Source: Macrostomum lignano
Taxonomy: Eukaryota
Reading direction: 5' to 3'
DNA length: 53,665 bases
Assembly (NCBI GenBank): GCA_002269645.1
Contig: NIVC01004239.1
Coordinates: forward strand, 1-53,665
Of this stretch, positions 1 through 23,734 are shown piece after piece. Every line of letters begins with the position of its first letter. Position 1 is the first letter of the stretch. The notes under the pieces were generated by a model that worked only from the letters and a program-made list of their open reading frames with translations, searched no databases and was not told the origin of the DNA. The position numbers were made by a program, and so were the translations under genes.

Positions 1-345
1 AGATCTTTTCACAGCACGGACCCAGCCTCCCCCAACCAAAGCCCTATCTCTGATTACGTCATCATCTATACATCCCCATAGAAGCAGTTAGCAAGAAAAA
101 AATTTCGATGCACATATATGAACAATGCGAACCAAGCAAATCGCGCGTCTACCAAAGCCAACCCTACCATGTGTGCTGTAATTGCATTTGTCAATGTACA
201 CACCCTATGAATCAGTGTCTCCTTCTTTGGAACACACGAATGCATTAGTCAGAAAGTTTGGATGCAATTAAAAACTCTCTCGATACTTTGCGTATAAACG
301 AGTAATCGATTGAATCAATTGTACACTTGACACATTTAATTACGT
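1..345 (+). repeat. Diverged interspersed repeat, inverted homolog of about 1857-2165; runs off the window start
   Basis: Blocks shared with the reverse complement of 1857-2165: agatcttt[t/c]cacagcac[g/a]gacc, ctc[t/c]gattacgtcatc, tagcaagaaa, tgcatttgt[c/a]aatgtacaca[c/g]cctatgaatcagtgtctcc, attta[at/aa]tacgtg. Confidence 0.7.
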
Positions 346-911
346 GCTGCCATGCAACGGAAAGACAGGATAATGGGGTGGGTGGTCACGCAGCCTCATT
401 CTCTCTTTCCTACTGATTTTTCATTATCTATCAATCTCAGCTCTTTCCGGGGCAACTCGCGCATGTATGCATAGTTCCTCATCAGATTTACCACATGTTC
501 ATTTACATGTGATGTACATATGCAAGCGGCAGCCGATTTAAACCTGAGAAATGGTTGAAGTACTCCCCGACTATGACTAAATGCACGTACGTTCAGTCAA
601 ATACAGGAAAATTTGACACCCGTAGTATGAAGATGTAATCTTCACGAAAGCTTCACATGTTTATCTTTCTCTGTGGAAATGACGATAGTTTCTCAATAAA
701 AATCTGTCATAGGCCCAATATAGCAGTTTAAATATTTTCACGAAAATGTCGCATTCTTCCAAGAACTGATTTTTGCAAACTCTACTGTCAGTAGGAAGAT
801 GAGTTTTCATAGAGACATTTTGTAAAACATAGACTAAACTTTCAAATTATTCGTTTACACGACCAACTGTCTATATTAATGGTGGGGTTATTATTACTTT
901 ACAGAAAAACG

Positions 912-1169
912 CATGTCCTGTGTTACGACACTGCCTAGCAACCGTATAATTTTATTAATACATGAACTAGCACTCCTATTTTACATTCATTGAGAGGCGG
1001 CGGCAGCGGGCGGAGGCGGCAGTAGAGACAGGGACTGTGCTGCGCACAGTCACGGTCTGGCCACCCTCCACCCGCTGCCGCCGCCTCTCAATGAATGTAA
1101 AATAGGAGTGCTAGTTCATGTATTAATAAAATTATACGGTTGCTAGGCAGTGTCGTAACACAGGACATG
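912..1169. repeat. Perfect 99-bp inverted repeat (arms 912-1010 and 1071-1169) around a 60-bp partly self-complementary spacer
   Basis: Arms compared base by base and are identical reverse complements. The spacer contains gactgtgc/gcacagtc and ggagg/cctcc pairings. No flanking TSD seen. Confidence 0.95.
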
Positions 1170-1775
1170 ATTTCTAGCAATTTAGGCTTCAATAGCCATG
1201 TCTTTGGTTGATTCTGGGGTGGCTTGTGGATGTTCGTGGGGGTTCATTCCTGCTTCAAAGCTGTCTAAGGTCAAGTTGAAAGCGACATTTGGACAAATTA
1301 GCTGTTGAAAGTATGGTTTCTAGTGATGAAACTACTGATTTTGATCAATAAAGTCTGCATTTTAACGTAAAAAATGCATAAAAACTGTGAAAAATTGTAT
1401 TTTCTTCTGAAAAAATGTGCATTTCTAGCAATTTAGGCTTCAATAGCCATGTCTTTGGCTGATTTTGGGCTGGCTTGTGGATGTTTGTGTGGGGTTCATT
1501 CCTGCTTAAAAGCTGTCTAAGGTCAAGTTGAAAGCGACATTTGGACAAATTAGCTGTTGAAAGTATGGTTTCTAGTGATGAAACTACTGATTTTGATCAA
1601 CAAAGTCTGCATTTTAAGGTTAAAATCGTAAAAAAACTGTAAAAAGCTGCATTTTAATGAAAAAATGTGCATTTCTAGTCATTTAGCTTTTAAAATAACC
1701 AAATTTCTTGTCTGAAATTCCAACTTTACTTTGTATGGAGAGGTCAGTGCATGATTCATTCCTGCTTCTAACAGA
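1170..1775. repeat. Tandem repeat with a 250-251 bp unit, two full copies plus a degenerate third
   Basis: atttctag[ca/tc]attt recurs at 1170, 1421 and 1671. Copies 1 and 2 are nearly identical. Confidence 0.9.
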
Positions 1776-1856
1776 TTAAACCGACCGTCTCAAAGACCAA
1801 GTCTGAAAGCTTGAAGTGAGAAGGTAGGGGAGGCGGAGAGGCAGAATTGAATAGCC

Positions 1857-2165
1857 TCACGTATTTAAATTTGTGGACTTCACTACTTCTAGTAAACGCA
1901 AGGGTGACTTATACTACTTACAAGTTTAGATCAAGTAAATCAGAATTGCATGCGGTGGAGACACTGATTCATAGGCTGTGTACATTTACAAATGCAGCTG
2001 GGGTTTGTCAATGCAGGTAGAGGTTGGCGGACTCGGATTTGCTCGCGGGGGTTGATGTGTGCATTAAAAGTTGGTTTCTTGCTATCTGGGGCGGCATGGA
2101 TGACGTAATCGGAGAAGAGAGGGGTTTTGAAGTTTAATATATGGTCTGTGCTGTGGAAAGATCTG
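1857..2165 (-). repeat. Second, inverted copy of the repeat at the window start
   Basis: See 1-345. ORF 1940..2368 overlaps it but has no recognisable domain. Confidence 0.65.
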
Positions 2166-2992
2166 TCTGTACACTGAAAATGAAGAGAGGGTCGAAATTC
2201 CTTGGCATTTAGAAGGGGACAGAGAGAACAGGGGCGAGTGTTAAAATTTAGCTCGATTTTGCTATGGGGTCTGCGCTGTGAAGACGAGTCTGGTGAACAT
2301 CGGAGGGGTGGCTGTTTTCGAACAGGGTTGAATTTGACTATGGTCCGAGTTAAAGGGTGATTCAGCATTCAGTATAGGAGCTTCGAGGGGATGGTTTACT
2401 GTAATTAAAGCGCGACGAAGCTTCTTGTATCATACCCACTGTCAATAGAAATATAAAGCACTGCTTCAACACAGTCCTGCATTTGGGGGGCAGACTTGGG
2501 AGAGGTTTAAAATCATTTATGAAGAGAAAATTATTGAAAAACAATGTAAAATTTTCTGTATATTCTATTTGCTGGTGATGGTGTACATGTCTCGATTCCT
2601 GTAATATGCTACTGATTAAATGTAAATATATCTTCATTGTAAATACTTATACATGATGTACGCTACACTGTTAGTTGACTCATTTGGTAGTAGATGAGAT
2701 TAGTAATTCTCGCCTCTGCGTACATGTAGTATTGTACATGTAATTTTGGTGCGCGCTCAGACCGTCTGGGGATGACACTGTAGATTAATGTGAGTGTACA
2801 TATAGAATTGGGGATAGACAATTTGGGATAGGGATTAATGTACATGGAATTAATGTACATATCCAATTTGAGATAGATAGGGATTAATGTACATGGAATT
2901 AATGTACATATATGAGCACATGGATTATTACGACTACATATTGCCATATATCACGCTTAGGATAGCGTTTTCGTATACTACTTACTTCATTT

Positions 2993-5900
2993 TCAGATAG
3001 TAGTATAATTTGCGTTTTTTGCGTCAAAACATCTGAAAACCCGGCAGACCCGGCGCGATACGTAGTTGTACAGCTCGAAGTCCGGGGTTTCGATGTACAC
3101 ATCAAGGATATTGACTGGAAGGGGGGCGTATGTCAGACAGTCACGGGATGACAGCTGTGTGTCAGACAGTTATGGGATGACAGCTGTGTGTCAGACAGTC
3201 ACGGGATGACAGCTGTGTGTCAAACAGTCACGGGATGACAGCTGTGTGTCAGACAGTCAGGGGATGACAGCTGTGTGTCAGACAGTCACGGGATGACAGC
3301 TGTGTGTCAAACAGTCACGGGATGACAGCTGTGTGTCAGACAGTCACGGGATGACACCTGTGTGTCAGACAGTCACGGGATGACAGCTGTGTGTCAGTCA
3401 CAGAATGGCAGCTGTGTGTCAGACAGTCACAGTATGTGTCAGTATTCCAGAATTCGGGGTGCTTCAGGATATCTGAACTAATTAAAAGATGTGTCAGGAA
3501 GTCTAACACGGCGGTGCAGTGGAATGCATTGAAGGTCTACCAGCGCTCACCAGTCAGGATGGAGGGTTCAGCATCGAAGCGGAAGGTCCGAGAGCCGTTA
3601 AGAAGCGCCTGTCGCATCGCAGTCCAGTCAATGCAGGAGTCCTTGGTGTTGGTGAGGCTCTTGTAGCCAGTGTAGCGCAGGTACTCCCCGCTGCTCACCT
3701 GGTCCTCGCTATTTAATGCCAAACAGTCAAACCCGGGCGAGATCGCTGGTGAAAGATTAACAAAAAAATGAAATTTAATTTTAGTCGAAATACAACGTAT
3801 TCTTTGCGATACAGTCTACTACAGTGCGATACAGTCTACTACAGTGCGATGTAGTCTACTACAGTGTGATACAGTCTACTACAGTGTGATACAATCTACT
3901 ACAGTAGCTAGTAAAGGCTTACGACAGAACGGTACGTTGCAGTAGGTGGCTGACAGCTGTCCGCTGTTGCCTCTATAGAAGCAGTAAGGGCCTTCGTTGA
4001 AACTGTCGATTGAAGCTCGGAAAGGAATGAACAGCGGGTTGGAACCTGCCCGAATCGGGTTGGAGGCTTTGGTGTGTTTTTTTGGCTCAATAACTCACGC
4101 ATGAACTCACTCATGTACTCACTCATGAACTCACCCATGAACTCACCCATGAACTCATTACAGAACTCATGAACATTCACTCTCTTCCATTCACCCAACA
4201 TACTGATCAGCCCACTCGCATTAAACCGCCAAATCGCACCTGAGCTCCGAACTTGATAGACAATCGCGGCAGCGTCTCCGCCGCAGGCTTCGGCGATATT
4301 TCCCCGGCACTTCCGGCTGCAAGCGAAGTCGCTAAGGGACAGCGCGGTGACATTGCTGACCTCTTCACCGCAGAGGCACTGGTCACCGTGCAGAGCCATG
4401 TAGGTGTAATTGGCCACGTAGCAGCACTCCGCGCAGCGCTCGTGATTCATCCAACCGTATGGATCTTGCAGGCACAGGTGCGGAAAGTCCGCTGCACTCG
4501 CATTTTTATCCAGACAGCCAACGTACAGGTGCATCTGGTCTGGAATATGGTGAATCATTCTCTATGGTGACTCACAAGCTTTAATTTCTCTACCCTCAAT
4601 GAGTGTACACTGGTGACTCATTCTCCAGCGCACAAACCTCAATTTCTCTACCCCCAATGAGTGTACATTGGTGACTCATTCTCCAGCGCACAAACCTCAA
4701 TTTCTGTATCCCCAATGAGTGTACATTGACGACAAATATCTTTCCTAGCCTGCACCCTCACAAAAACATGCAATCCTAAAGCATAGGCTATTAATCGCAA
4801 TCTCAGTTATTTTTACAGGCTGAAAAAGGCTCACTCACGAGTGGAATTATCTTGAAAACTCTTCAGTGGCAAACCGCGGGGCTGCCTGCACTTGCTGTCG
4901 TCCTCGGAGTAGCCCATGGCCAAGATTTGAGCTGCCAGCGGCACCCCAGCGGCCTGAAGCTCCCTGGCCGCAGAATTCCAGCCGATGCAGTTAGCGGTGG
5001 ACAAGTAGGGAGCAATTTTTGGCAGATTATTGATGTCGGACACTGGTTCCCTGACCTGGGCGGTGCCGAACAGATGTACGATGGACAAGTTTCCTATGTA
5101 CTCTTCTCCGCCAAGTGTTGTACGGCAGGTGCTGACAGAGGCTAAAATAACCGCAAGTGAAAATAACTAAGTAATACTAGAACGTTGCTACTACCGCGTG
5201 TCTAAGAAGTACATAGTGGGATCCTGGGCAATATACTGTGGTTTATTTTTTATTCCTACTTGACACAATTTAATCACATTTTATGAAATGATTGTTGCCT
5301 TATTATTTGTCTATCCTCTATCTGTCTTATATGCATGCACAAAGGGCTTTAGCCCCAGGGGCGCCAGCACCAGGGGCGCCAGCACCAGGGGCGCCAGCAC
5401 CAGGGGCGCCAGCACCAGGGCGCCAGCACCAGGGGCGCCAGCACCATGGCCAAAAGCATCACAGAATCGCAGGTTCCTCACTGTTCTTTCCATAGTGCAA
5501 GGACTGCGAGATGTTGCTCTCAACTGCCGAGATCACGTGCAGCAGCCCCTGGGCAGCCGGTCCATACTGGGCAGCGCTAGTCGTGCCGGATTCTGGGCTC
5601 CAATGGATGTCGAATTTCAGCTGCTTCTTGCAGTCGGTGTCGCAGGTCAGGGCCCTGGTCAGCTCTTTGATGTTCACCTGGAATGTTGTAAAATATGGCG
5701 CTACGCCTGCAGCAATGGCGCCAGCCAGAAGGGGCACCAGCAAGAACTTCAGTTACTGTAAACTACTGTGTACACGTACAGTTGAAATACATCAGTGCAT
5801 AAATTGTCATAGCAACCTCGATCCTCAGAGCGCCTCACCTGCGGACTTGCCCGACTCATAGTAACCAAATCGGTCGGGCAAAAGTACACGTCGGGAAACT

Positions 5901-6129
5901 CGAACGGCAACGAAGTGCTCAGACTGGTTCTCAGAGGCACCGCGGCGAACTGCTGGCCGAGGCTGTACATGTGGAAAGTGAAGCCGCCGTAGGTGCCCAG
6001 CAGGAAGCAGATCCACAGGCCGCGGCCGATGGCGCCAGTCTGGGCCCCGAAGCGGCCGAGCCCGTGCGCGGTAGTGTAACCGCAGAACTGCCGCATCAGC
6101 GACTCGTCATCTTCTTCTTTGGTTGCCAT
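2993..6129 (-). CDS. DEG/ENaC (ASIC/ENaC superfamily) channel-like gene with inserted kringle-like and WSC modules; 3' part (thumb, TM2) not resolved in the window
   Basis: Exons: 6129-5839, 5677-5482, 5141-4839, 4539-4240, 3745-3551, 3114-2993(?). All have GT-AG boundaries and consistent phase. Exon 1 encodes FCGYTTAHG (pre-TM1 HG motif), TM1 LWICFLLGTYGGFTFHMYSL and FEFPDVYFCP (FPxVTxCN-like). Exon 4 is a WSC domain. Exons 3 and 5 are kringle-like. Family call is strong; exon 6 and the end point are uncertain. Confidence 0.75.
3131..3435. repeat. Intronic minisatellite, 29-bp unit, about 10 copies
   Basis: gtcagacagtcacgggatgacagctgtgt starts at 3132, 3161, 3190 and onward. Confidence 0.95.
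3551..3745 (-). CDS. Second partial kringle-like exon (195 nt, phase 1-1)
   Basis: FDCL...YTGYKSLTNTKDSCIDW resembles the kringle N-terminal half Y-x-G-x2-S-x-T-x3-C-x2-W. Acceptor tttcaccag|CG and donor G|gtgagc. Confidence 0.55.
3805..3905. repeat. Intronic minisatellite, 20-bp unit, about 5 copies
   Basis: Unit gcgatacagtctactacagt repeated head to tail. Confidence 0.9.
4093..4175. repeat. Intronic 12-bp repeat
   Basis: tcacccatgaac-type units; these produce the EFMGEFMGEFMSE tail of ORF 3908..4558. Confidence 0.85.
4240..4539 (-). CDS. WSC-domain exon (300 nt, phase 1-1) of the DEG/ENaC-like gene
   Basis: YVGCL...MNHERCAECC...YTYMALHGDQCLCG...CSRKCRGNIAEACGG...VY matches the WSC cysteine pattern. 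Acceptor attccag|AC and donor G|gtgcga. Confidence 0.9.
4565..4735. repeat. Intronic repeat of about 58 bp, 3 copies
   Basis: tggtgactca...aatgagtgtaca starts at 4565, 4611 and 4669. Confidence 0.85.
4839..5141 (-). CDS. Degenerate kringle-like exon (303 nt, phase 1-1)
   Basis: CRTTLGGEEYIGNLS...NCIGWNS...SKCRQPRG follows the kringle pattern C-x-G-x-Y-x-G...C-x2-W...CRNP. Only 3 of the 6 canonical Cys are present. Confidence 0.6.
5355..5445. repeat. Intronic 15-bp GC-rich repeat, 6 copies
   Basis: Unit ccaggggcgccagca. Confidence 0.95.
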
Positions 6130-7075: not shown

Positions 7076-8412
7076 ATCGCTGTGTATAAAATAGTGTAGG
7101 CAAATTCGGTATTCGCGGGTGGATTCTCTATTGGTGTGAATTGTGATTCAGGTGGAATTTGCGTTTTTTAGGTTGCAGCTGTGCACACGACCGGGTGCAC
7201 TTTGGCGACTGGCTGACTGTATAAATTTAGACTTAAGGCCTCCCTTCCCCTTTCCTTGTCGTTTGTCTTCCCCGTACTTGTGTTTTGATTGACTGCGGCT
7301 CTCCTCGCTCTCGCACTACTCGCTGTTTTTGCGTGTGGCATTAGTTTTAATTCTATGTAAAAAGTGACTGAATTAGTCACAATCGGGTGTGCGCAACAGA
7401 GAACGATCGAGTTTTGTGAACATGTGAAGATCGATCGCGTCAAATTTGGTCTGGCTGTCACTATAAAATTTACTGAAACAAGTAGTATGCGAAGCTTACA
7501 TTGTGCATCAATCTGCAACTAGCATGGGTACGGAACCAACCGCGGGTAATCATAGGCCGGTGGATTCTGTAATACACTGTATGTCTACAGATTATAGATT
7601 ACATGTTCATACTGTACACATGTTTTTGTTGAGCCATCATGTACATGTAATGCGGGCTAGGCGGATTCTGTGTATTTGGGTGCTATTGTGGCGGATCCCG
7701 CTTCGGGCGGGTTACGCTTACGGCGGATATAAACGATATTGATCAGGGGGGACTACATACACTGCATGTTACAATTGCAGATATAGCAATCACGGGACTC
7801 GTAGGAGACTATAAATCATGAAATTTAGAACTATTTTGGATCCAGTAGTAACTTAGTAAGTACTTTACTGGAACAGGTAGCTTTAAAACCTAAGTACACA
7901 CAATTGTATGCACGAGTGTTAATTCTAAATAATTAAAATTTGAAATGAAAAAATGCATTTATGCATTTAAAATTTTAGCGAGTTATATTTAGGAATTTAC
8001 GATTGATTTTAAAACAAATGATGTCAAAAAGTTTCACACGTTTTACTTAAAAAACCCTTGATTGTTTTTAGAGCATACAAATTGTAAAAGTTTTTTATGA
8101 ATACAAAGAAAATTACTTTTAACTTAGAGCTGGTGTACGCTGACTGTATCTTAGGAATATTTCCAATTTAATAAGCCCACTCACAATTTGCTAAGCACAA
8201 ATTTCTTAGAAAGACGTAAACACCCTTTCCTGTCCGTTTGGTAGTCAGCTGATCTTCTTCCTTGTTAGTTTAAAAAAAGTTTCCTGTTTAGAAACCTAAA
8301 GCTGTTTTTTTGCAATATTTCGTTGTCTTTCTGTATGTTTTCTAGAATTCAAGTAGCTTGCTGAGTTACTAGGTAGTTTTATTCAATTTACTTTGTGTGC
8401 TTTCACTTCAGA

Positions 8413-11400
8413 ATGACAAGTAGTGCAAACAGCAAGGAATTTATTGTTAATCAAAAATATCGTCTTATTAAGAAAATTGGAAGTGGTTCATTTGGAGAAA
8501 TCTACCTCGGTGTAAACCAAACAAATGGAGAGGTATGGATGTTTTTATTTGAATTTACTGTTTAAATATTGTTGACAATGTTGTGATAAAATTTAACTTT
8601 AATGTTTTTTATTAGTTTTCAGCTTAGTTTTGAAGTTTGTACATTATTATTAGCCTAACCTCTATTGCTTCCAAACTTAAGATCATATTAAGTAATGGGC
8701 TTTTAACAGCCCAAATTTAACTATAGTGCATGCTAGAAGTTTAAAGAAGAATAACATCTTATTCTTATTTTGGCTCCAGGATGGAATTCTTGCTTGGGCC
8801 GTTGGGGGTAGGAAAACGCACACGCATGTTTTTGGAGCAGCACGCAAGTGTGCACACCAGCTGTAAAAAATTCATAAAGCAGATCATGGCAGGCCCATGC
8901 ACTAAAAATGAAATTTCTAGTTTTTCAATTCTTATGCCAACGTAAACTAGAAAGTTGTACTTTAAGTGTAAAGTAGCTTGATCACTATAATTTTTACAGA
9001 AAATATTCTTTAAAAATTATAAGAGTTTCACTAAACTTTAAAGTAACTATTTTTGCTAAAAACTATTCTTCTTTGTTTTACTTTTGTTTAAAATTTTCTG
9101 GCATAAAAACAACCTTCTAGACTAGGCCTATAAAAAGTAGGAGAACTTGAGCGCGCATACACTACATGGCATATAACCATGTTGAATGCATATAAAAGTC
9201 AAATCCTATTTGTGATTCTGCGGCAAACAGCTTCTTTGCAAGCGCATATGATGGAGTAAGCATACACCTTTAAGAGCGCGCAAGTAGGCTTCTTTTCAGT
9301 GCGCAAGCGGGCACAAATTTGACAAGCGCGCACAAACGCGTAACAACTTTTGTGCAAGAATTCCATCCTGGTTTTGGCTCCTAGCTAGGCCTAAATATTT
9401 GAATACATGCTAGTATATACATATATACATATATGAAAAATTCCTCATTGGCTTTTGTTTTTTGTATTTTTTCATTTTAATAAAAATAAATTAATAGCTT
9501 TATTAGGCTTTCTAGTTTTGTAGGCAGTAGGCTTAGTCTTAGCCTTCCTATTATTTTTTTTAATTTAGAAACAACTGGAAGTTGGAAGCCTATACTCTAT
9601 ATTCTCAAAGGCGCATATATAAGGTGGCCACACCAAGGTAGCTACAACCTATAGGTATAGCTCTAAATTGGCTTATACAAAGAGAGATAGCTTTTAACTT
9701 TTTTTAAATTACTATTGTAGCTCTAGGTGCAACCCATTTTGGCAAAGGAATTTTTAGCAAAAATGCTACACTCAGGAAGGTGTACATTATGGCGGAAAAT
9801 TCTGGCAGACATCAACAAAAAATATGTGCAAAGTGGCGCACACGGTGAACAACAAAGGCTTAGCAGAAGTTTTTAGCGCACAGTGGTACACAGCAAAACC
9901 TAATCAGAAAAATTTAGCTCACAATGAGTCATCTAAATGTATAATCTGCATATGCAGTGCATAAAATAAGCTTTAAGATTACGTTTTTTCCAAGCATATC
10001 AATAAAAAATTGTTGTTTCTTGGTAAGTGAAATGAATAATAAAATTCAAAATGGGATTTTAACGTAAAGTTAAAGCTATTTCTTTTGAGAATTTTCTACG
10101 TGAGCTAAAAAAAGCAAAAGTTTTGAGTTAAAAAAAGCCTATATAAGGTACAAAAACACTGGGTAACAAATAAATCTTTTTTGAAAAATCGTCCAGGGTT
10201 TTCCAGCTGGCTCATTTCATATAAGCATGGTCGTAACATGACAGGTTATTTTTACTTATAAAATGAAATCTAATAATAGAATATACTAAACCAATATTTT
10301 AAATGAAAGATTATTTTGTCTAGAATATATTTATAGAGTTTCATATAGATATCATCATTAGTATAGATGCTATTAAACCTTAAATGACACTTATGGTCGT
10401 AACGACAGGATTTTTGACATATAGAAACTAAAAGGTAAAAGTCTTATAACATTTTTCATTTTTGATATTTTGCAATACATTTTTAAAATTTGACTAAGAA
10501 CATCTTTAGAAATCATACTCTTTTATTAGAATATATAAACTCAAAAGGCAACAAAGATACAAAAGAAAAGGCAGCCTTATGGTCGTAACATTATGGTCGT
10601 AACATATTTTTTTCTGTCAATTCAGTAACTTTGAGGTACTAATACATTAAAAATATAATAGATTATTTGGTCACCAATGCTTTTATCTGATGATGCAAGT
10701 ACTATACTTTTATCTATAGTTTGTTTCAACCTTCAAAAGCTTTCTATTTGTTTTTAAAAGGTACAAAATCTTAATGATGTCTTTTGCTTCAAAAAATGTC
10801 CAAATTTTTACAAAAATGACTTTTTGCCAATTGATAACATACTAATCCAACATTTTACCATTCCTTTATTCTTAGATTGTATATATTGCACAATATAAAC
10901 ATTTGGTAAAAAATAGGCTAATTAGGCAATGGCAAGCAAAAATATTGACTTTTTTCTATTTTCCAAAAATGTCCATCTTATATGGAATGAGCCAGCTGAA
11001 TTAGACTAATTTTGATGCTCTGAGTCTGAAAATGACCTTGGTTTTGCTTAGTCAGGTCAGGATTTTTCACAACAGAAATTTTTTAAAATTATATTTTCCA
11101 AAAAACAAATTTTTATATATTATAAGAAACCCCTAGTTTTTCCATTTTCCCAAAGAAATAGAAGTCTATGTAGTTACACTCATTCAGTTTTATTTACTCT
11201 ATTAAATTGATCAGAATGTATTAGATATGATCAAGGTGTTATCATAGTATTAATTAGTAAGCTTGTATAAGAAAAGTGTTACTTGTACATGACAAAAGTT
11301 CAAAGTTCACGGCATAAATTGGCATTTCTTTGATTCCCGTGTGTGAGTAGCTGCTGGGTTGTCTCTCTTCAGTGACCAGCAGTAGTCCGCCAGCATGACT

Positions 11401-14400
11401 GCGTCCCACCTCCCTTGGTACCTCTCCTCCATTTGGCGCATGTCCTGATAGAACCTTTCTCCCTGCTCGTCGCTCATTGCCCCAAGGTTTTCAGGAAACT
11501 TCTCCATGTGTGAGAACAGGAAGTGCATCTTTATGCTCATCAAACACCCAAGTTTTCTGAAGGCCTCTATCATGTTGCTGATGAGTCTGGCGTGGTTTGG
11601 TGCCTTCGTGTTCCCTAGAAAGTTGTTCACCACCTGCACAAACGATTTCCAGGCAGCGCACTCTAGCGTGTTCATGGAGTTTTGAAACTCTGGGTCTTTG
11701 ATGAGCTGCCAGATCTGTGGGCCATCAAAGATGCCAGCCTTCAGCTTCTCAATGGTCAGTTGAGGAAAAGCTTGGCACAGGTAGTTAAAGCACCTCCCAT
11801 CTTTGTCCAGAGCGCGCGTGAACTGTTTCATTAACCCAAGCTTCATATGTAGCGGTTGGATCAATATCTTCTCCCGGTCAACAAGAGGTTTGTTTACAAT
11901 GTTTCTTGTTCCAGGTACTAACTGCTCTCGCGCAGGCCACTCTTTTTTTACATAGTGCTGGGCTCTGTCTCGACTGTCCCACATACATATGAAGCATGAG
12001 TATTTTGTGAACCCAGATTGCTGACCAAGTAAAAAGTTCACCATCTTGAAGTCGACGCAGATGATCCATTGGTGCTGCTCATATTGGATTTTGTCGAGCA
12101 TGTACTTCACTGCTTCATATTTCTCTTTGAGAGTTGTCGAATGCGCAAGAGAGATTGAGGCAAACTGGTTCCCATTGTGGAGGAGCACACACTTTAAAGA
12201 GCATTTACAACTGTCAATGAAGAGTCGCCAATCTCTCGGATTGTATTGAGGAGCGCCAAGTTTGACAACAAGACTGGAGACATCTTGGCAATACACGAGG
12301 TCTTCCTCCTGGCAGAAGTAGACCATGTATTCCTCATGTCTTCTGCGAAAAAAGGTAATATGCGCGTCCTTGCCAAGAAGATTTTTCTCTTTGAGTCTCG
12401 AGGCCAACAGCTCGGAAGAAGTCTTTGACAAGCTGAGATCCCAAACCAGATCATTAAGCTCACATTGTGAAAAAGGCTGTGGACCATCTTGTGCTTCATA
12501 TTTGTCTTCTGCATCTCCTTCCTCATCTGTAGTGCTCAGGGTCTCAGCATCACAATCAGGAAGCTCTGTGAATGCTGGTATTGGAATTTATTCGCAGTGA
12601 GCAACTGGACGGCGGGCAGATGGAAGGTCGGGGTACTGGAGGCTATGCCAATTCTTCCTGTTGATACTAGTAGTGTTGATGGCGCAGAAGTAACAATCCG
12701 ATGCATGGTCAAATGGCTCCCTCCAAACCATCAGAATTCCAAACTTCAGTGAAGTTTTTGCGCCCTTTGTCCACCGCCGGAGGTATTCCACGCACGTCTT
12801 GCACACTATGTGGGGTGCCCAGGACTTATCTTGGTCACCCAACTTGACTTTAAAATAAGCCTAGTAGGCACGCTTCACAAATCCTGTGATGTTCTTCCTG
12901 TCTACTGATAGCGTGTATTCTCTGCAGATGTAGCAGAAAACGTCAGGATTATTCCTGCATGACCGTCGAGCCGAAGCCATATCAATAAGCTGAAAGTAAT
13001 GGCAGGATGCTATATATTGATGAACATATATAATATAATATAATATATAAATGATATATTTATTTAAATAACAAATAAATATAATACTAAAATAATGTAG
13101 GGCCTATATATCATAGATACAAAAGTGGAACTTAAGACCCCTATAGTATTAGCATATATGCATAGCCCGTCAGGTAGACGTATGGCTGTATCTCAAAAAG
13201 TTGACCTGATAGGGCAAAATCAATGTGATATTCAGACTCAGAGCACCAAAATTAGTCTGAATCAGCTGAGAAAACTCTGACGATTTTTTAACTGTTACCC
13301 AGTGAAATTTATCCGTTTTTTAGTTTTGTTTTAATTGGATTTTTACTGAGTTTTTAGTGCTACAGCGCATTAGTTAGCTATGTATTTGTCAATAAATGAA
13401 TGTACACCTCGGTGCACAAATTCATATTTTAGCTTCGCGCACAGCGCACACTCCAAAAATATGCTGAAATATTATGTTGAGTAGTCAAGAAATGTTAAGC
13501 AAGTAATCTGCACATTTTTATGCAGCATTTTTAATAGTCATACTGTCATAATGTCATTTTATATAAAGATATATATGAATATATTGTATCATAAATAATT
13601 TATATTATTTTTAAATGTTTTTATTAGTTTATTTGATATTAAATAATAAATAATAATCAAAATAAATGAATAATACAAGGGCTGATCAAAAAGTTCTGCA
13701 AGTGACCTCACAACTCAGTGTTACAGCAACCACGGCGTCTAATCAGTGTCACATTCCCTCAAAGTACTTTCCACCACTATCCATGCACTGTCGCATGCGT
13801 GTGCACCATGTCTGAAAGCAGTCATGGTACTCAGAAGTTGGTATACCCTGTAGAGCTGAATGTACCACTTGGGCAAGGTCTTGTATGTGTGAAAACGGCC
13901 TCCCAGAAATGACGGATTCGATCCTCGGGAACAGCCAAAAGTCACAGGGTGCTAGGTCTGGAGAGTAGGGTGGATGGGGCAGCAGCCGGACCTCCTGCTG
14001 CTCCAGGTACGCCATGGTTGAGGCCGCTCTGTGCGGTGCCGCATTGTCATGGTGCAGCAGGAGTCAAGGTCCATGCCTGGTTCGCGCACGTTCCTGCCGC
14101 TCCTGCAGCACGCCTGGCAGAGCATGTGTCTATGTAGTACCTGGCAGTTACTGTGGCACCCACTGGAAGGATGTTTACTGATACAACACCCTGAGAGTTG
14201 AAAAAATGGTGAATATCCGCTTCCAACTGCGGAATCCGGTCTTCAGCACCTTGGGCCTCAGGCTCATCTTCTGCCAGCCAGACCATGTTGGACTGCTTAT
14301 CCTTCTTGGTAAAAGAATGAGATCCAACATTCGCCTCCTGTGATGACATCCGACAGTCGTCGTGGGCCATGGGGCTAAAAAATTTGCACCCACAAGAGAC

Positions 14401-17400
14401 AGATGCGCACCCTCTCTGCTTGCTGCTCCGGAGTGAGAAGATGGGGTACCCACCGAGCGCAGGTCTTTGTGCGGCCCAGTCGCTCATGCATGATGTTATG
14501 AGCACTTCCATAGCTGACACCAAGCTCATAGGCAAGGAATCTTAGCGTAATGCTCCAATCCTCACGAATTATTGCATCGGCATGGGCCACGACATCTTCG
14601 GTCACGGATGTCCGGGGTCGGCCAGACCTCGGTTCATCGTTGAAGCTGTCCCAGCCTTCCAAGAAATGGCGCAGCCAGCGGGCAACTGTGTCAAATGATG
14701 GAGCAGAGTCAGCTAAAACATTCACCCGATCGGTATGAATCTCAGTCACTTTGCAACCAAGTTGCATGCACATAAAGATATAGAAGCGAACACTGTCTTT
14801 TGATGTTTCCATCAGCTACTGAAAACACATGGAAAATATATGGCTGTGAAATTTGACTGGAGCACATTTGGAAGCCAAAAATGTATATAAATATAGCAAA
14901 CAGATATAGCCGCATATGTGTAAGTTTTTGGCTTTTGTCGATTCTATTACTAAAAGCTATAACAAAAGGTTGCAGAACTTTTTGATCACCCCTCGTATTA
15001 AAGTAATAAAAATATACTAATAAATTTTTGCTTATATGTGTCATTCCATGAGAGTTCTATGAAACAAAGGCTGCAGCACTAAGTTGTCTAGCTAAGTTGT
15101 AATTGCCAAATATGACATCCATATTTCTAGGAGTGTCTAGCTGTAGTTGCAGCTGGTTAGCTAGCCAAATTCTTGTATAAGGATCTGAAGAAATCCTTAG
15201 ATGGAATAAAAAAATAGTGATAATATTTCCAGTTAGTGTTCCATTTAGTTATTTTTTGTATAATAATACCAAGATGTGCACAACAATACAACTGATACAA
15301 TTGTTAAAAAAAGGAAAATGCCTTGTTGAAATTTCATTGCCATATTGATATTTCATATATTGAAGGGCATTTTTACCCTATATATATTATCTATATAAAC
15401 ACCCATAAAAATACTCAACTTTTCAACTTGACCTGAGTAAAATTTCTTGACAGTCAAGTAGTTGAAAAAAGAGTCAATTACTCAACATGTAGAATACTCA
15501 GTTGAGTACTTGTTTGGCCTCTAGCAACAAGGTCCTAAACCTAGGTAGTCTAATACTATATGCCCATAGTCTATAATATAAGGCAGCTTTTATGCTAAAA
15601 TTTTGCCTCTTACTAAGGATCTTAATATAGCAAAAATGGCCAAGTTCAGGTTTGGCATATATGGTATAGCCTAATTGTGATTAAAGAAAACTTTTTAAAA
15701 TAAAAATTCATACATGCGCAACCTTGGGAATCACTTGGCCATTTCTTTTGGCAACACACACATGTAAGTCGCTATTGGCTGAGAGCAGTCACGTGACTAC
15801 TATTCCATCCAATAGCAACTTACATGTGTGTGTTGTCAATAGAAATGGCTGGGTGAATCCTTGGTTATGCCCAAGCATGTAAAAATTGTTAGCAACTTAT
15901 AGAGAGTAAAATTAAAAGGAGGATTATAAACTTCTATAAAAAACAAACACTTTAAAGTTTAATAAAACTCTCACTTCAAAGAATATATTGATATTATAAG
16001 AAAATTAGCATGAAAGCACCTTATTCTTGGCAAATTTTTTGATTTATAGAGGCAAAGAATAAAAAAACTAGAATTTTCATTCCAGCATATAATTACTGTC
16101 TAGTAGGATTAAGATGGAAAATTTTTAGAAAAATGCTACATATTTTGCAAGTGAGCTAAAAATGTAATTGTATAACAAAACTTTATAACATAAAATCCAC
16201 TGTGAAATTACATTAAAAAGTGCAAATGTGCAATTGGTAAGATAATGCTTGAATGTGTAAAACAAATTTCAACCTCAAACAAACAAAAACAGACATTCAA
16301 GCCTTCAACCCCCAGTTAAAGTGATATACCATTCAATTACACCAAGCCTATTTAAAAATGCTTTTAGGAAATCGCAGTTAAGCTGGAAAGTCAGAAGGCC
16401 CGCCATCCGCAGTTGCTCTATGAAAGCAAGCTGTACAAACTGCTTCAAGGTGGCATCGGCATACCTCATGTTCGGTGAGTGCTTTTCACTCATTGGCAAG
16501 CGCTTCAGAATGGGATAGATTTAAAGAACCTTGATAGTTACTAACGGGTAATTCCATGTAACCCACTTAAACTTAGCTGGTTCGGCGTAGAAAAAGACTA
16601 CAATGTGCTGGTGATGGACCTGCTCGGGCCCAGCCTTGAGGATCTGTTCAGCTTCTGCTCACGGCGATTCACGATGAAGACTGTGCTGATGCTGGCCGAT
16701 CAGATGATCAACAGAATCGAATACGTGCACAATAAGAACTTTATCCATCGCGACATCAAGCCGGACAACTTCCTCATGGGCATTGGGCGGCACTGCAACA
16801 AGGTGAGCTAAATGCAGGTAGTTATGTTGTAAGCTCTAGACTGTTAGACTCGCCACCAAAGTCAGGGCCGCTGTACAGTACAGTATTGACGCTGTAAAAT
16901 TGACGCTGACGCTGAATTGCCTCAGCGATGGTAAAAACTTTAACTAACTCTCAAGCATTTTAATATCCCGCAGGTGTTCATCATCGACTTTGGCTTAGCC
17001 AAGAAGTACCGGGACAGTCGCTCCGGCAAGCACATCCCCTACCGGTGCGTTTCCTTATTTTTAATCATCATTTTTATGTTCAAAATGTCGGTTATGCTAC
17101 TTACAGTAGAAAAATTAGCGTCCAGTCAGAAAATCAGCTCAAAGTTAACTCAAATTCCGCAGCGAGGACAAGAACTTGACTGGCACGGCCAGGTACGCCT
17201 CTATCAATGCTCATTTAGGCATTGAGCAATCGCGCCGAGACGATATGGAGGCCTTGGGCTACGTGCTCATGTACTTTAATCGCGGCTCACTGCCCTGGCA
17301 GGGTTTGCAGGTCAGAATTTTTTTGTATTGTTAATATTCCAGGTTGACACCAGCATCCCAGGTTGACACCAGCATCCCAGGTTGACCCCAGCATCCCAGG

Positions 17401-18291
17401 TTGACACCAGCATCCCAGGTTGACCCCAGCATCCCAGGTTGACACCAGCATCCCAGGTTGACACCAGCATCCCAGATTGACCCCAGCATCCCAGATTGAC
17501 CCCAGCATCCCAGGTTGACACCAGCATCCTATGTTAACCCAAATACCCCAGGTTGACCCAACTACCCGAGGTGAACTCAAATACCTAAAATTGACCCAAA
17601 CACCCCAGGTTGACCCAAACACCACAGGTTGACCCAAACACCCCAGGTTGACCCAAACACTCAGGTTGACTTAAACACCCCAGGTTGACCCAAACACTCA
17701 AGGTTGACTCAAACACCCCAGGTTGACCCAAACACTCAAGGTTGACTCAAACACCCCAGGTTGACCCAAACACTCAAGGTTGACTCAAACACCCCAGGTT
17801 GACCCAAACACCCCAGGTTGACCCAAACACTCAAGGTTGACTCAAACACTCAAGGTTGACCCAAACACTCAAGGTTGACCCAAACACTCAAGGTTGACTC
17901 AAACACTCAAGGTTGACCCAAACACTCAAGGTTGACCCAAACACTCAAGGTTGACTCAAACACCCCAGGTTGACCAACGAACCCCCTCTTCTGTACATTC
18001 AAACTGTTGCAGGCTGCTAACAAGAAGCAGAAGTACCAGAAGATCAGCGAAAAGAAAATGTCCACCCCAGTTGAAGGCCTGTGCAAAGGCTTCCCTGCCG
18101 AGTTCACCATGTACTTGAACTACTGCCGCGGCCTGCGGTTCGAGGAGGCGCCGGACTACATGTACCTGAGGCAGCTGTTCCGCATCCTGTTCCGCACGCT
18201 CAACCATCAGTTTGACTACACCTTCGACTGGACTCTGCTCAAACAGCGCAGCAACGCTTCAGCCGCAGCCGCCTCCGCCAGTCAGCAGTGA
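8413..18291 (+). CDS. CSNK1A1: Casein kinase I isoform alpha, 316 aa, 6 exons
   Basis: Exons 8413-8532, 16368-16474, 16577-16802, 16974-17044, 17163-17310, 18013-18291 join in frame. Motifs: [81 protein letters not shown]. The N-terminus [20 protein letters not shown] and the short C-tail are alpha-type. Confidence 0.96.
8776..9371. mobile_element. Non-autonomous DNA transposon with an 8-bp TSD (hAT-like), 596 bp
   Basis: Perfect 18-bp TIR ccaggatggaattcttgc / gcaagaattccatcctgg. TSD ttttggct at 8768-8775 and 9372-9379. Confidence 0.85.
10209..10993. mobile_element. Nested 785-bp non-autonomous TIR element with a 4-bp AGCT TSD; superfamily not assigned
   Basis: TIR ggctcatt[t/c]catataag. 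TSD agct at 10205-10208 and 10994-10997. Removing it restores similarity between the Chapaev left and right ends. Internal motif tggtcgtaac occurs 4 times. Confidence 0.85.
11307..12980 (-). pseudogene. Chapaev3-type transposase, 558 codons, two in-frame nonsense codons
   Basis: One frame from ATG 12980 ([19 protein letters not shown]...CKTC...CYFC, Cys-rich N-terminus) to the stop at 11307. TAG at 12861-12863 and TAA at 12588-12590; no frameshift seen. Confidence 0.88.
13676..14995 (-). mobile_element. Degenerate mariner element, 1320 bp
   Basis: 26-bp TIR c[a/g]aggg[c/g]tgatcaaaaagttctgcaa with TA TSD. Frameshifted transposase fragments contain PRSGRP, WVPHLLT and [16 protein letters not shown]. 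Confidence 0.95.
15720..15866. repeat. Short imperfect palindrome (MITE-like) centred on agtcacgtgact
   Basis: Arms ccatttcttttggcaacacacacatgtaagtcgctattgg (from 15739) and ccaatagcaacttacatgtgtgtgttgtcaatagaaatgg (to 15848). Confidence 0.8.
17338..17975. repeat. CK1a intron-5 minisatellite; 19-bp units grading into 19-21-bp variants
   Basis: ccaggttgacaccagcatc, then ccaggttgacccaaacacc and caaggttgacccaaacact. All share the core aggttgac. Confidence 0.95.
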
Positions 18292-18388
18292 CCTCGCCTG
18301 ACCTCCCGTCTGGGTCCATCCTCCCAATTTTCCCAACTCCACCGCTTCTCAATGCTCCTCGACCGGATTCGACCTATTAATTGAGATT

Positions 18389-18394
18389 AATAAA
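18389..18394 (+). promoter_or_regulatory. Candidate poly(A) signal of CK1a
   Basis: aataaa about 100 nt after the stop codon; position only. Confidence 0.3.
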
Positions 18395-19453
18395 CATTTT
18401 TGAAAGAAAAATTATGTTACGCTTCACTTTTCCGTCAGTGTTTTTATTGTTTTGTTATTAATTCTCTTCTGCTTTTGTCTTGTGCTTTTGCTCACCTGAG
18501 TTGCTAAGAAACTGAAGCCGAAGTCAGAAGAAGCAAACACGCACCCAACTCCTTTATTTGTATCTGTAACTCCAAGCCGATTTTGTAATTGTTCATTGCT
18601 ACAATTAACGCCCTACGGTAAGAACTCGTATATATATTACTCATTTTGTTGTACTTTGTTATCACCGATTTTAGAAGATTTAAATGTTTTAATTATATTA
18701 AAACAAAATTTGTTTCTCATATCGTAATAACTAATTGCATAGAAATGATATATGTACAAACTGACAGTAGTAAGATGGCATGATAATGACAAATTACAAT
18801 TGCACTAATGTACTTTGAAACCGTATATATTAATTAAAATCTGTACAAGCACTGGCCATGCATGCTGCCTATTTTTGTCTTATTATAAATCCTGCATAAG
18901 TTTTATTTCAAAATTATCAAAATTATGTTTTTTTTCTGAAGATTTTTTTAGCTATTTGAATTCTATATCTTATTGTATTGTATTCGTACCACCCTTGCAT
19001 GTCCGTTATTTCTGTAATTTTGTGTCTCGCAAGTTTTCATATGTTTTATGCATGAAAAAATCCTTTGTAAACTTTGATTTTTCGGGTCAAAGATAAACGA
19101 TTGTCGGCTGACTCTTTTTTTATGTGAATAAGTTTTTATCGTTGCGGCCCTCGATAAATATAATAGCGATAAATATGTCACTTCAATTTTATTTGACTCC
19201 TAAAAATGACTCAAAACTTTATTATTAAAATATTTTAAAAAAAAAAGTTTTTACGCGAATCTGTATTTATATTTAATAATGGGATGTAATAACTATTGGG
19301 AGTGGAAAAGTGATGGCGAAGAAGGTGAAGAAGTGGTGAAGTAGGAATGCAGGAAGTGAATGTACATGTATAACAGTGTATATGCAACCGAACAAAATGA
19401 ATGTTTGTTAGTATGCAGTGTATAAAAATTAATGTACAATGTACTTTGTACAA

Positions 19454-19731
19454 GGACGCCTTAAGTAGGACTGGAAACCTCGTTTCTTGAAAAGTTTTTG
19501 AAGGCAGGCTTTTCCAAAAATACACTACGGAGATAATAAATTTTCATTTTTCCAGCACGAAAATTGGTATTGCTTTTGATAGGAGGCAGATCCAGTGTTC
19601 ATCTTTTGATATGTTGTGCCTTTCTTATTGCTCTATCGATATAAAGCTTTTCGTCGAGAAAATTGGGATTCTATGTTAATTTTTTATTCTTTCAAGAAAC
19701 AAGGTTTCCCGTCCTTCTACCTAAGTCGTCC
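19454..19731. mobile_element. Degenerate MITE with TIRs of about 40 bp (GG..CC ends, possibly Kolobok-like)
   Basis: ggacgccttaagtaggactggaaacctcgtttcttgaaa versus tttcaagaaacaaggtttcccgtccttctacctaagtcgtcc. The flanks acaa/ttga may be decayed TTAA. Confidence 0.6.
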
Positions 19732-19940
19732 TTGAACTTTGTATGCTGAAAGATACTTCAGTAGAGACATTGAAACTTTAATTAATTATTAGGCTTTAGC
19801 AGGATACTCTTTGAAAAAGTGAATGATTCTCAAGGACGACTAGCTAGGCCTATCATCCGTATTAGTGTGCTAATGATAAGTTGAGACTTTCAACAAAAGC
19901 TAGTGAAAAATCTCATTATTAAAAAAAATGTCAAACAGTA

Positions 19941-22900: not shown

Positions 22901-23734
22901 TTATTTTAAGTTAATTGGAGTGAAATGTCTAATAAGTAACTATAATTTTTTATTTTAAGTACATGTAGCTTTGGTATAAGTATTAATGTAATGAGTACTT
23001 AAAGTAAAATCAAGCAAGTTATAGTTTTCAGAAATTATGCTACAAATAATCAAAAATATACTAGTATCCGAATTCCTTTATTAAGGAACATGCAGTCGAT
23101 ATTAAATCCACAATGTGCTTTTTGGTGTTCAAGGATAGTTCCCTGACTTTTTCTATTATTAGTTAGATTTTATTATATTTAATGTAAAAATGAACAATTC
23201 TATTCAAGGTAAAAATGAACATCCTTTATTTGTCGAATCATCTTGCCTTTGAAAAGATACATAGTGAAAACTTGATTTTTAATTCAACCTTTCAAGACTT
23301 ATTTAGACTTCTCAATTCAGTGATTAGTTAAACTGATCGAAGTTCTTTTGAGTGCATGCTATAATAATTTCGCACTTTTTCGCACACGATAATTTTAAAT
23401 GTCTGGGATTTAGAGCAGAGTAACAAAATGCTGTGCTCAAAAACATTTCCTTTGTCAATTTCTTGTTCTTTTATTTTTGCAAAAGAAATTTAACTGCATA
23501 TTTAAAATAAAAATGGAAGAAAATTTTATTTTCTCTTTAATATTTTTGTCGTTTATTTTCCGCAACAAAGAATAACAAATAGCCTTGATTTCTTCTCAAT
23601 TTCAAGTTTTCTTGTGGTTTTAGTAGCAGCTTCTTACAGAAATTGTCGAAAGAATTTTTTTGTACGATTATTGGTCGATGTATAAACTTTTTTTGCAATA
23701 ACAAAAAGTTGTGACCTAGCTTTGAGAACGACCC
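19941..23734. mobile_element. 3.8-kb TIR element with a 4-bp TSD (Sola2-like by its termini only)
   Basis: TIR gggtcgttc[g/t]caaa..ctagg. agta flanks both ends (19937-19940 and 23735-23738). Broken coding-like relics on the minus strand at about 21350-22560; no recognisable transposase. Confidence 0.6.

Follow-up and report, generated by a model that had tools for sequence, protein, structure and literature searches.

The window analysed here, a stretch of 53,665 nucleotides from the flatworm Macrostomum lignano (contig NIVC01004239.1 of assembly GCA_002269645.1), contains the front half (exons 1–6 and the start of exon 7) of a DEG/ENaC channel gene, Mlig007204.g1. In the encoded protein, a cassette of predicted kringle and WSC modules occupies the finger region of the channel ectodomain. 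The explanation that best accounts for the evidence overall, with a probability of roughly 0.6, is a Macrostomum-restricted DEG/ENaC subunit with a shuffled finger cassette, acting as a tethered mechanosensor or as a receptor for macromolecular ligands.

The gene is oriented on the minus strand, with an ATG at position 6129, and exons 1–6 are all bordered by GT-AG introns and share one reading frame (Table 1). From exon 3 on, each exon within the window begins and ends in phase 1. The translation of exons 1–6 and the first 47 nt of exon 7 (3114–3068) is identical to residues 1–485 of PAA82974.1 (BOX15_Mlig007204g1, UniProt A0A267GC91), a 1052-residue M. lignano protein with the automatic UniProt name “WSC domain-containing protein”. 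This protein is encoded on contig NIVC01000440.1 of the same assembly, the identity to the window being 99.8%. The remaining six exons lie on that contig, beyond position 1 of the window, and a tblastn search with two paralogs found no channel body within the window. Overall, the window and NIVC01000440.1 are 99.76% identical with small indels, and the two may be different assembly versions or near-identical copies carrying the same transposon insertion. The acceptor of exon 5, which the original prediction had placed further downstream, is located at 4045 (GGGCAG/GT), where it reproduces the sequence of PAA82974.1. A candidate acceptor at 4015 was rejected, since 4045 yields the deposited protein.

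An intact twin copy, Mlig028168g1 (PAA59863.1, contig NIVC01002218.1), is 99% identical and was reconstructed exactly as 13 GT-AG exons with phase-compatible junctions. The GenBank annotation of the assembly is based on RNA-seq data and on de novo transcripts aligned to the genome (PMC5730564). Exons 3–5, whose connection to exon 1 had been open to refutation, are joined to it in the transcript-based models of the two gene copies and of at least five further paralogs. In at least six paralog lineages, located on different contigs and with a mutual identity of about 30–35%, the parts follow one another in this same order. In sequence L001, an unannotated tandem paralog with at least exons 1–3 and the same architecture (26189–27559) is found roughly 8 kb downstream of Mlig034226, and a possible degenerate paralog fragment is present at 23356–23457 and 25287–25421.

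The channel parts were examined with the Pfam ASC profile (PF00858). It matches the spliced window product at profile positions 1–84 only (E 9.5e-10, 38.5 bits, cut-off 23.6), and the full PAA82974.1 in three stretches before and after the insert, up to position 455 of 455 (E 7.4e-38). In the near-complete paralog P0003 (1091 residues), the profile match restarts behind the insert at position 137 and extends to 455, including the second transmembrane segment (TM2). The full protein features the HG motif, the first transmembrane segment (TM1), strand beta1, the CxFxGxxC...GxCxxF strand pair and the palm, beta-ball and cysteine-rich thumb. The exon 1 motifs TTAHGLGRF and FPDVYFCP are conserved in all paralogs, the final N of FPxVTxCN being replaced by P. 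Both TM2 (GLWSGISVLTVCELIELLVY) and the selectivity filter G-I-S (GLWSGISVLTVCELIE) of PAA82974.1 are encoded outside the window, and the filter reads G-V-S in P0003. The best PDB sequence matches of the full protein are the FaNaC structures 7yvb and 8on7, followed by ASIC5 and ENaC. Judged by sequence, Mlig007204 is a member of a DEG/ENaC subfamily seen only in Macrostomum, with FaNaC peptide-gated channels as its nearest solved relatives, and the intact product is predicted to be a trimeric cation channel. The original prediction of a spliceable minus-strand gene with a DEG/ENaC N-terminus is thus confirmed by the GT-AG exons, the ASC match and the identity to residues 1–485, and its DEG/ENaC assignment by the ASC body and TM2 that follow the modules in the full-length product.

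The cassette comprises 386 residues (163–548), is encoded by exons 3–8 and contains 22 cysteines. It is entered and left in phase 1, and exons 3, 4, 5 and 6 are each of phase 1-1. In the alignment with Aplysia FaNaC, residues 10–97 correspond to chain residues 66–155 and residues 580–613 to 207–240. As the alignment blocks end at 155 and restart at 207, about 480 residues occupy the place of about 50 in FaNaC. In paralog P0011, the ASC profile extends through the segment encoded by exon 2 to position 129, and the beginning of exon 9 (SIPGLVRDRIGSALLASRF) precedes the CxFxGxxC strand and is presumably equivalent to helix alpha3 of other members. According to the alignments, the cassette is inserted in the finger (alpha1–alpha3 region) between two retained segments, exon 2 and the start of exon 9. 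The modules had been claimed to lie at the finger position, which agrees with their location where helices alpha1–alpha3 lie in FaNaC; the accompanying claim that they replace the finger had to be abandoned, since finger-like helical segments are kept on both sides. In Malacoceros FaNaC1, residues V87–F144, with helices alpha1–alpha3a, form the FMRFamide pocket, and this outer corner is also where ENaC has its protease and ion sites and where matrix tethers have been proposed to act in mechanosensitive members (PMC11026163). The phase-1 borders at both ends of the cassette are a classical signature of module shuffling and point to exon shuffling into a phase-1 intron. The phase 1-1 structure of exons 3, 4, 5 and 6 also suggests that the WSC exon landed in an intron splitting a kringle.

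The WSC domain is recognized at full length (positions 1–82 of 82) in the spliced product by Pfam WSC (PF01822), with E 3.2e-10 and 40.5 bits (cut-off 27.8). The WSC exon matches yeast Wsc1 (7pz2) with E 4.7e-7 by sequence and with E 1.2e-9 when the family profile is used, and the same profile matches the Kremen1 WSC with E of about 1e-9. A Foldseek comparison of the predicted model with 7pz2 gave a template modeling score of 0.72 and a root-mean-square deviation of 3.0. The WSC cysteines are conserved in the paralogs, and the domain may serve as a carbohydrate-binding module.

For the kringles, the family profile was compared using hhalign with a profile of 37 diverse kringles taken from search hits. 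Kringle 1 without its WSC (exons 3 and 5 joined) was matched with a probability of 98.1% (E 1e-13) over 83 of 83 template positions. Exon 3 alone covered template positions 1–61 (95.3%, E 2.3e-8), exon 5 alone positions 58–83 (96.5%, E 8.4e-10) and kringle 2 positions 5–83 (97.2%, E 3e-11). The control values were 0.2% for the equally cysteine-rich WSC segment and 0.1% for reversed sequences. All six cysteines of kringle 1 (WSC removed) and of kringle 2 align to the kringle profile, with the motifs in order. In exon 3, the motifs are CRTTLGGEEYxG (Cys1), CIGW (Cys2) and CRQPRG (Cys3), and these three cysteines are conserved in all paralogs. Exon 5 aligns to the Kremen1 kringle sequence SPWCYV..YCEIPAC, with PYCF and TYC in place of PWCY and WEYC. 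An exhaustive phmmer search with a paralog cassette as the query retrieved an apolipoprotein(a)-like protein with 30 kringles (E 3e-50). Against PDB sequences, the family profile matched Wsc1, Kremen1 and then kringle proteins only, namely tPA kringle 2 (E 1.6e-3), HGF, plasminogen, ROR1/2, apolipoprotein(a), neurotrypsin and prothrombin. With single sequences as queries, kringles were matched only weakly in the PDB. One paralog fragment is automatically named “Kringle domain-containing protein” in UniProt.

The cassette reads as the N-terminal part of kringle 1, a complete WSC, the C-terminal part of kringle 1 and a loop-expanded kringle 2 (exons 6–8). The WSC is positioned in the kringle 1 loop between CRxP (Cys3) and GPYC (Cys4). 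Exons 3 and 5 carry three cysteines each, which are sensible only as a 1–6, 2–4, 3–5 pairing across the WSC, so the two exons appear to form one kringle. These features support a WSC nested inside kringle 1, with a second kringle next to it. The kringle-like and WSC modules named in the original prediction have therefore been retained, and their layout has been revised: exons 3 and 5 are read as halves of one kringle split by the WSC, and the second kringle, formerly seen as partial and assigned to exon 5, starts in exon 6 and ends in exons 7–8. No convincing second case of a nested WSC was found by a regular-expression scan of the other search hits for kringle N-halves and C-halves 130–320 residues apart, which returned only multi-kringle proteins with missed halves.

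The distribution of the family was studied with a word-indexed search of 5.8 billion proteins and an exhaustive HMMER search of 1.84 billion representatives, the latter with a paralog cassette as the query. The word-indexed search returned one relative, a partial M. lignano protein with ASC and WSC whose cluster contains P0003, and the HMMER search recovered PAA82974.1. Word-index homologue searches yielded M. lignano proteins only, the method being insensitive to distant relatives. All end-to-end cassette matches, and all matches that also hold channel sequence, belong to M. lignano. The 22 cassette cysteines (22/22) are conserved in every paralog covering them, with the exception of one Cys-to-Ser replacement in P0160, and the shared cassette motifs are GEEYxGN, WNxAAR, CRxPPGLPL and GPYCFF...YCNVPxC. 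Eight N-glycosylation sequons are located at residues 152–454, which fits an extracellular position. Among the UniProt entries of the family, several are fragmentary and were automatically given wrong names.

The copy of the gene in the window is interrupted in exon 7 by a non-autonomous inverted-repeat transposon. On NIVC01000440.1, the whole insertion spans 13059–19788, and its arms (13059–14894 and 17953–19788) are about 100% complementary. Positions 1168–3072 of the window match the right arm at 99.5%, the partner arm of the inverted repeat lying about 3 kb further on. The insertion is flanked on both sides by a 4-bp GTAC target duplication in NIVC01000440.1. No transposase-size reading frame was found in it, none of the frames exceeding 125 aa. 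The element also contains an inner 105-nt palindrome (NIVC01000440.1, 14965–15222) and short direct repeats (window, about 1244–1689). The coding part of exon 7 stops after ...PDFELY at 3068, where the intact copy on NIVC01002218.1 reads through ...GAGCTGTACACCAATGG..., and an in-frame TGA occurs near 2996, 24 codons into the transposon arm. A reading of exon 7 up to this TGA, with the tail NYVSRRVCRVFRCFDAKNANYTTI taken as a degenerate kringle, was rejected, since the tail is transposon arm and the intact copy continues ...ELYTNGRKANNFCRAARV.

The deposited coding sequence of PAA82974.1 bridges the insertion by a gap without GT-AG borders (junction 13064/19780 on NIVC01000440.1). The annotation mapped de novo transcripts by BLAT at 80% identity or more, and many duplicated blocks of the assembly are at least 95% identical (PMC5730564). 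The PAA82974.1 record probably reflects a transcript from the intact twin that was placed on the interrupted copy during mapping. Apart from the insertion, 15 codons distinguish the two copies, 10 by non-synonymous and 5 by synonymous differences, and both are free of frameshifts and stops; with so few differences from the twin and no other coding lesion, the insertion looks recent. We give about even odds to the view that Mlig007204.g1 is a dead copy, a recent pseudogene, which would be compatible with a functional family. The 6.7-kb insertion with its target duplication and the TGA, the gap without splice borders, the relaxed mapping in an assembly with near-identical duplicated blocks and the uninterrupted twin Mlig028168.g1 all argue for it. 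On the other side, the coding exons are otherwise undamaged, cryptic splicing could remove the insertion from some transcripts, and the insertion could be heterozygous or particular to the sequenced line.

In the proposed mechanism, the trimer would display three kringle(WSC)-kringle modules at the upper outer corners of the ectodomain, where they would bind an extracellular glycan, protein or matrix partner. Binding, or force on the modules, would move the finger and bias channel opening, so that the channel would respond to force through a tether or to macromolecular ligands as their receptor. Tethering or gating by glycans or matrix is plausible. Its most specific form, a self-tethered sensory channel in which the cassette binds a specific glycan or matrix polymer and passes force or occupancy to the finger to open the pore, is put forward tentatively. 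If true, this would be the first DEG/ENaC with the long-postulated extracellular tether within the subunit and the first ion channel gated via a WSC or kringle module.

Plasminogen-type kringles carry acidic lysine-binding residues in the loop after Cys3, and their pocket also includes the aromatic Trp62/Trp72. The acidic residues are absent here, as kringle 1 reads RGLPL after CRQP and then enters the WSC, and kringle 2 reads CRAARVLLD; classical kringle ligand binding, which the original prediction mentioned for kringles in general as the binding of Lys-like ligands, is therefore unlikely. This is one of several results that weigh against the proposed explanation. Pfam Kringle (PF00051) gave no match on the window protein or on full PAA82974.1, and in the paralogs it remained below the threshold (best 22.7 and 22.1 bits versus 34.3), covering only the YxG...T.sG..C..W motif of the second module. 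Thus, of the profile checks proposed with the original prediction, ASC and WSC exceed their cut-offs and Pfam Kringle fails, the support for both kringles coming from the hhalign comparison. AlphaFold modeled the whole cassette with a predicted local distance difference test score (pLDDT) of 56 and kringle 1 with its WSC alone with a pLDDT of 71 in the best model and 47–57 in the other four. At this low-to-moderate pLDDT, Foldseek returned WSC and Kremen matches and no independent kringle match; the match to the neurotrypsin kringle covered 18 residues with E 2.1 and was not significant. The kringle assignment is consequently drawn from sequence profiles and the cysteine framework, not from the fold.

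Further points against the proposed explanation concern the function and the gene copy at hand. The window copy alone would give a truncated product, because the transposon splits exon 7. In the P0160/P0012 lineage (Mlig006398/Mlig013355), the WSC is below Pfam detection, a framework Cys is replaced by Ser and the filter of P0160, G-I-F, deviates from G/S-x-S. These proteins are possibly non-conducting or modulatory subunits, and given the degenerate WSC and the filter, sugar binding or conduction may be missing in some members. Any function of the cassette in gating is purely our inference. Three other M. lignano DEG/ENaCs, from a FaNaC-related branch, gave no currents in oocytes (PMC9234716), so heterologous tests may be hard. 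These three channels (Dandamudi et al. 2022) could not be matched to the present family, as their identifiers come from a different transcriptome version.

The main rival explanation assigns the cassette an anchoring or organizing role. The modules would anchor or cluster the channel at one extracellular structure, for instance the basal lamina, a cilium sheath, mucus or an adhesive secretion, or they would aid folding and trimerization. The channel would then be constitutively open or be gated by some other signal, for example a peptide, pH or ions. We consider this possible rather than probable. It is in line with the missing lysine-binding site, with the finger segments kept on both sides of the cassette, with the peptide gating of the closest solved relatives and with Kremen1, whose kringle and WSC are reported to form a rigid protein-binding platform, not a moving part (PMC5014086). 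It is harder to reconcile with the insertion point, which is the most gating-sensitive corner in the family and where a rigid body of 386 residues is unlikely to be neutral for finger movement. Less likely than anchoring is a protease-regulated channel, in which the kringles would recruit a serine protease or a kringle partner that cleaves or unlocks the finger. The model takes up the activation of ENaC by finger cleavage, kringle-bearing proteases such as plasmin being reported to act on ENaC (PMC9540061), and the cassette sits in the equivalent region. We nevertheless regard it as improbable: inspection of the aligned paralogs by eye revealed no evident furin-type or other conserved cleavage motif, the lysine-binding residues of the kringles are missing, and the WSC would be left without a role.

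A further explanation is an annotation artefact, in which one model would wrongly combine an ASC 5′ exon, the gene of a Kremen-like secreted protein and an ASC 3′ gene. M. lignano assemblies are repeat-rich and redundant, and the fragmentary, misnamed UniProt entries of the family also speak for such an error. However, the parts are not divided by a signal peptide or a stop, the cassette exons lack a start codon context, and all junctions of the intact copy are GT-AG and phase-compatible. Taken together, the exact 13-exon twin, the transcript-based models and the order of parts shared by at least six lineages on different contigs and by the tandem neighbor make a chimeric annotation very unlikely. 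The channel subunit with a shuffled finger cassette remains the preferred explanation.

No description of a DEG/ENaC channel with WSC or kringle modules was found in the searchable literature, and no gene identifiers of the family were found in searchable papers. The comparative study in which M. lignano DEG/ENaCs were tested does not mention WSC or kringle domains (PMC9234716). The architecture is deposited in GenBank and UniProt under automatic names, yet apparently undescribed. The novelty suggested by the original prediction thus holds for the literature and not for the databases: with the automatically named entries in place, the ASC and WSC combination could be retrieved by a domain-architecture query.

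How mechanosensitive or matrix-associated DEG/ENaCs are coupled to the outside is a long-standing question. The tethers proposed for nematodes and mammals, separate proteins or glycans, have been difficult to identify. In the present family, adhesive and lectin-type modules would be found within a gating-sensitive corner of the subunit itself, strongly constrained across a multi-gene family. M. lignano is amenable to transgenesis and RNAi, so that the removal or exchange of a single defined cassette would put the tether hypothesis to the test. In addition, the locus provides a clear case of phase-1 module shuffling into an ion-channel gene and of a WSC placed within a kringle. The scope of these statements is a family found in one flatworm species.

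The coordinates of the channel gene parts and of the associated repeats are given in Table 1. Introns 2–6 each hold their own minisatellite. A gene for a casein-kinase-1-like protein kinase is located on the plus strand at about 8.4–16 kb, head to head with the channel gene, with an exon at 8395–8565; the annotated kinase neighbor on NIVC01000440.1 has Pkinase matches. Within the span of the kinase gene, a minus-strand open frame of 374 residues (11307–12431) without a Pfam match may be transposon-derived, and a separate fragment of the Mos1-type helix-turn-helix is found at 14.4–14.8 kb (14047–14812, minus strand). On the plus strand, at about 26.5–35 kb, lie three or more head-to-tail copies of a unit of about 3.9 kb that carries a mariner/Mos1-type transposase fragment (PF01359; reading frames start at 26513, 30424 and 34335). 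Exons of the transcription elongation factor SPT5, encoding NGN, KOW1, KOWx and KOW4 domains, occupy 38.4–45.2 kb on the plus strand, and an exon-sized minus-strand frame at 50372–51022 matches the LicD family (fukutin/FKRP-like phosphotransferase).

Table 1. Parts of the Mlig007204.g1 channel gene, transposon and minisatellites in the window (module names are assignments from sequence; aa, amino acid residues).
Feature	Position	Strand	Description
Exon 1, aa 1–97	5839–6129	−	HG motif TTAHGLGRF, TM1 GLWICFLLGTYGGFTFHMYSL, beta1 FPDVYFCP; GT donor; Pfam ASC 1–84
Exon 2, aa 98–162	5482–5677	−	Proximal finger, two cysteines, helix-like AAQGLLHVISAVESNISQSL; AG/GT; ends in phase 1
Exon 3, aa 163–263	4839–5141	−	Phase 1-1; predicted N-terminal three quarters of kringle 1 with helical loop expansion
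Exon 4, aa 264–363	4240–4539	−	Phase 1-1; complete WSC, 10 cysteines, between Cys3 and Cys4 of predicted kringle 1
Exon 5, aa 364–404	3923–4045	−	Phase 1-1; predicted C-terminal quarter of kringle 1, GPYCFY...TYCNVPFC, Cys4–6
Exon 6, aa 405–469	3551–3745	−	Phase 1-1; predicted start of kringle 2, FDC...YLRYTGYKSLTNTKDSCIDW
Exon 7, first 47 nt, aa 470–485	3068–3114	−	VNILDVYIETPDFELY; rest cut off by transposon; GTAC at 3071–3068 is the duplicated target site
Transposon insertion, left part	1–3067		Element of about 6.7 kb, 1836-nt terminal inverted repeats; left arm about 3071–1240
Minisatellite, 29-mer ×10.5	3131–3430		Intron of channel gene
Minisatellite, 20-mer ×5	3805–3905		Intron of channel gene
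Minisatellite, 12-mer ×5.5	4092–4157		Intron of channel gene
Minisatellite, 58-mer ×2.5	4583–4728		Intron of channel gene
Minisatellite, 15-mer ×6.5	5351–5446		Intron of channel gene

Among known systems, the FaNaC channels (Aplysia, 7yvb; Malacoceros FaNaC1, 8on7) share with the flatworm protein the HG motif, TM1, beta1, the cysteine-rich thumb and the G-x-S filter of TM2, and the finger alpha1–alpha3 corner that forms the FaNaC ligand site is the site of the cassette. In FaNaC, however, about 50 residues separate beta1 from the CxFxGxxC strand, compared with about 480 here, which include three extra predicted disulfide-rich domains. Outside TM2, the two show little identity (E about 1e-12 overall), and peptide gating is not expected to be conserved.

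Kremen1/2 (PDB 5fws) is the only well-studied animal protein pairing a kringle with a WSC. The family profile matches Kremen1 with E 2.7e-9, through both the WSC and the C-terminal strand pair of the kringle, and Foldseek gives E of about 7e-4. In Kremen, the kringle, WSC and CUB domains follow one another on a single-pass receptor, whereas in the flatworm channel the WSC is predicted within kringle 1, a second kringle follows, no CUB is detected by Pfam, and the modules are placed in a loop of a two-pass channel. The cassette therefore does not reproduce the Kremen ectodomain arrangement, to which it had been likened.

Yeast Wsc1 (7pz2) is the best single-domain match by both sequence and fold. 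It is reported to be a surface mechanosensor whose WSC contacts cell-wall glycans (PMC9024836). Unlike the flatworm protein, Wsc1 is not a channel; its cytoplasmic tail relays the signal to a kinase pathway. The WSC of the flatworm contains two cysteines more. Large lineage-specific additions to DEG/ENaC ectodomains have precedents in the MEC-4/MEC-10 degenerins and in the GRIP domain of the ENaC finger. In these channels, gating is affected by the extracellular matrix or by events in the finger, laminin and nidogen being reported as matrix partners of MEC-4 (bioRxiv 10.1101/2022.02.11.479800). Their matrix modules (Kunitz, EGF, collagen) reside on separate proteins, or the insert is unrelated to mobile modules, whereas the flatworm channel appears to carry recognizable shuffled modules within the subunit itself.

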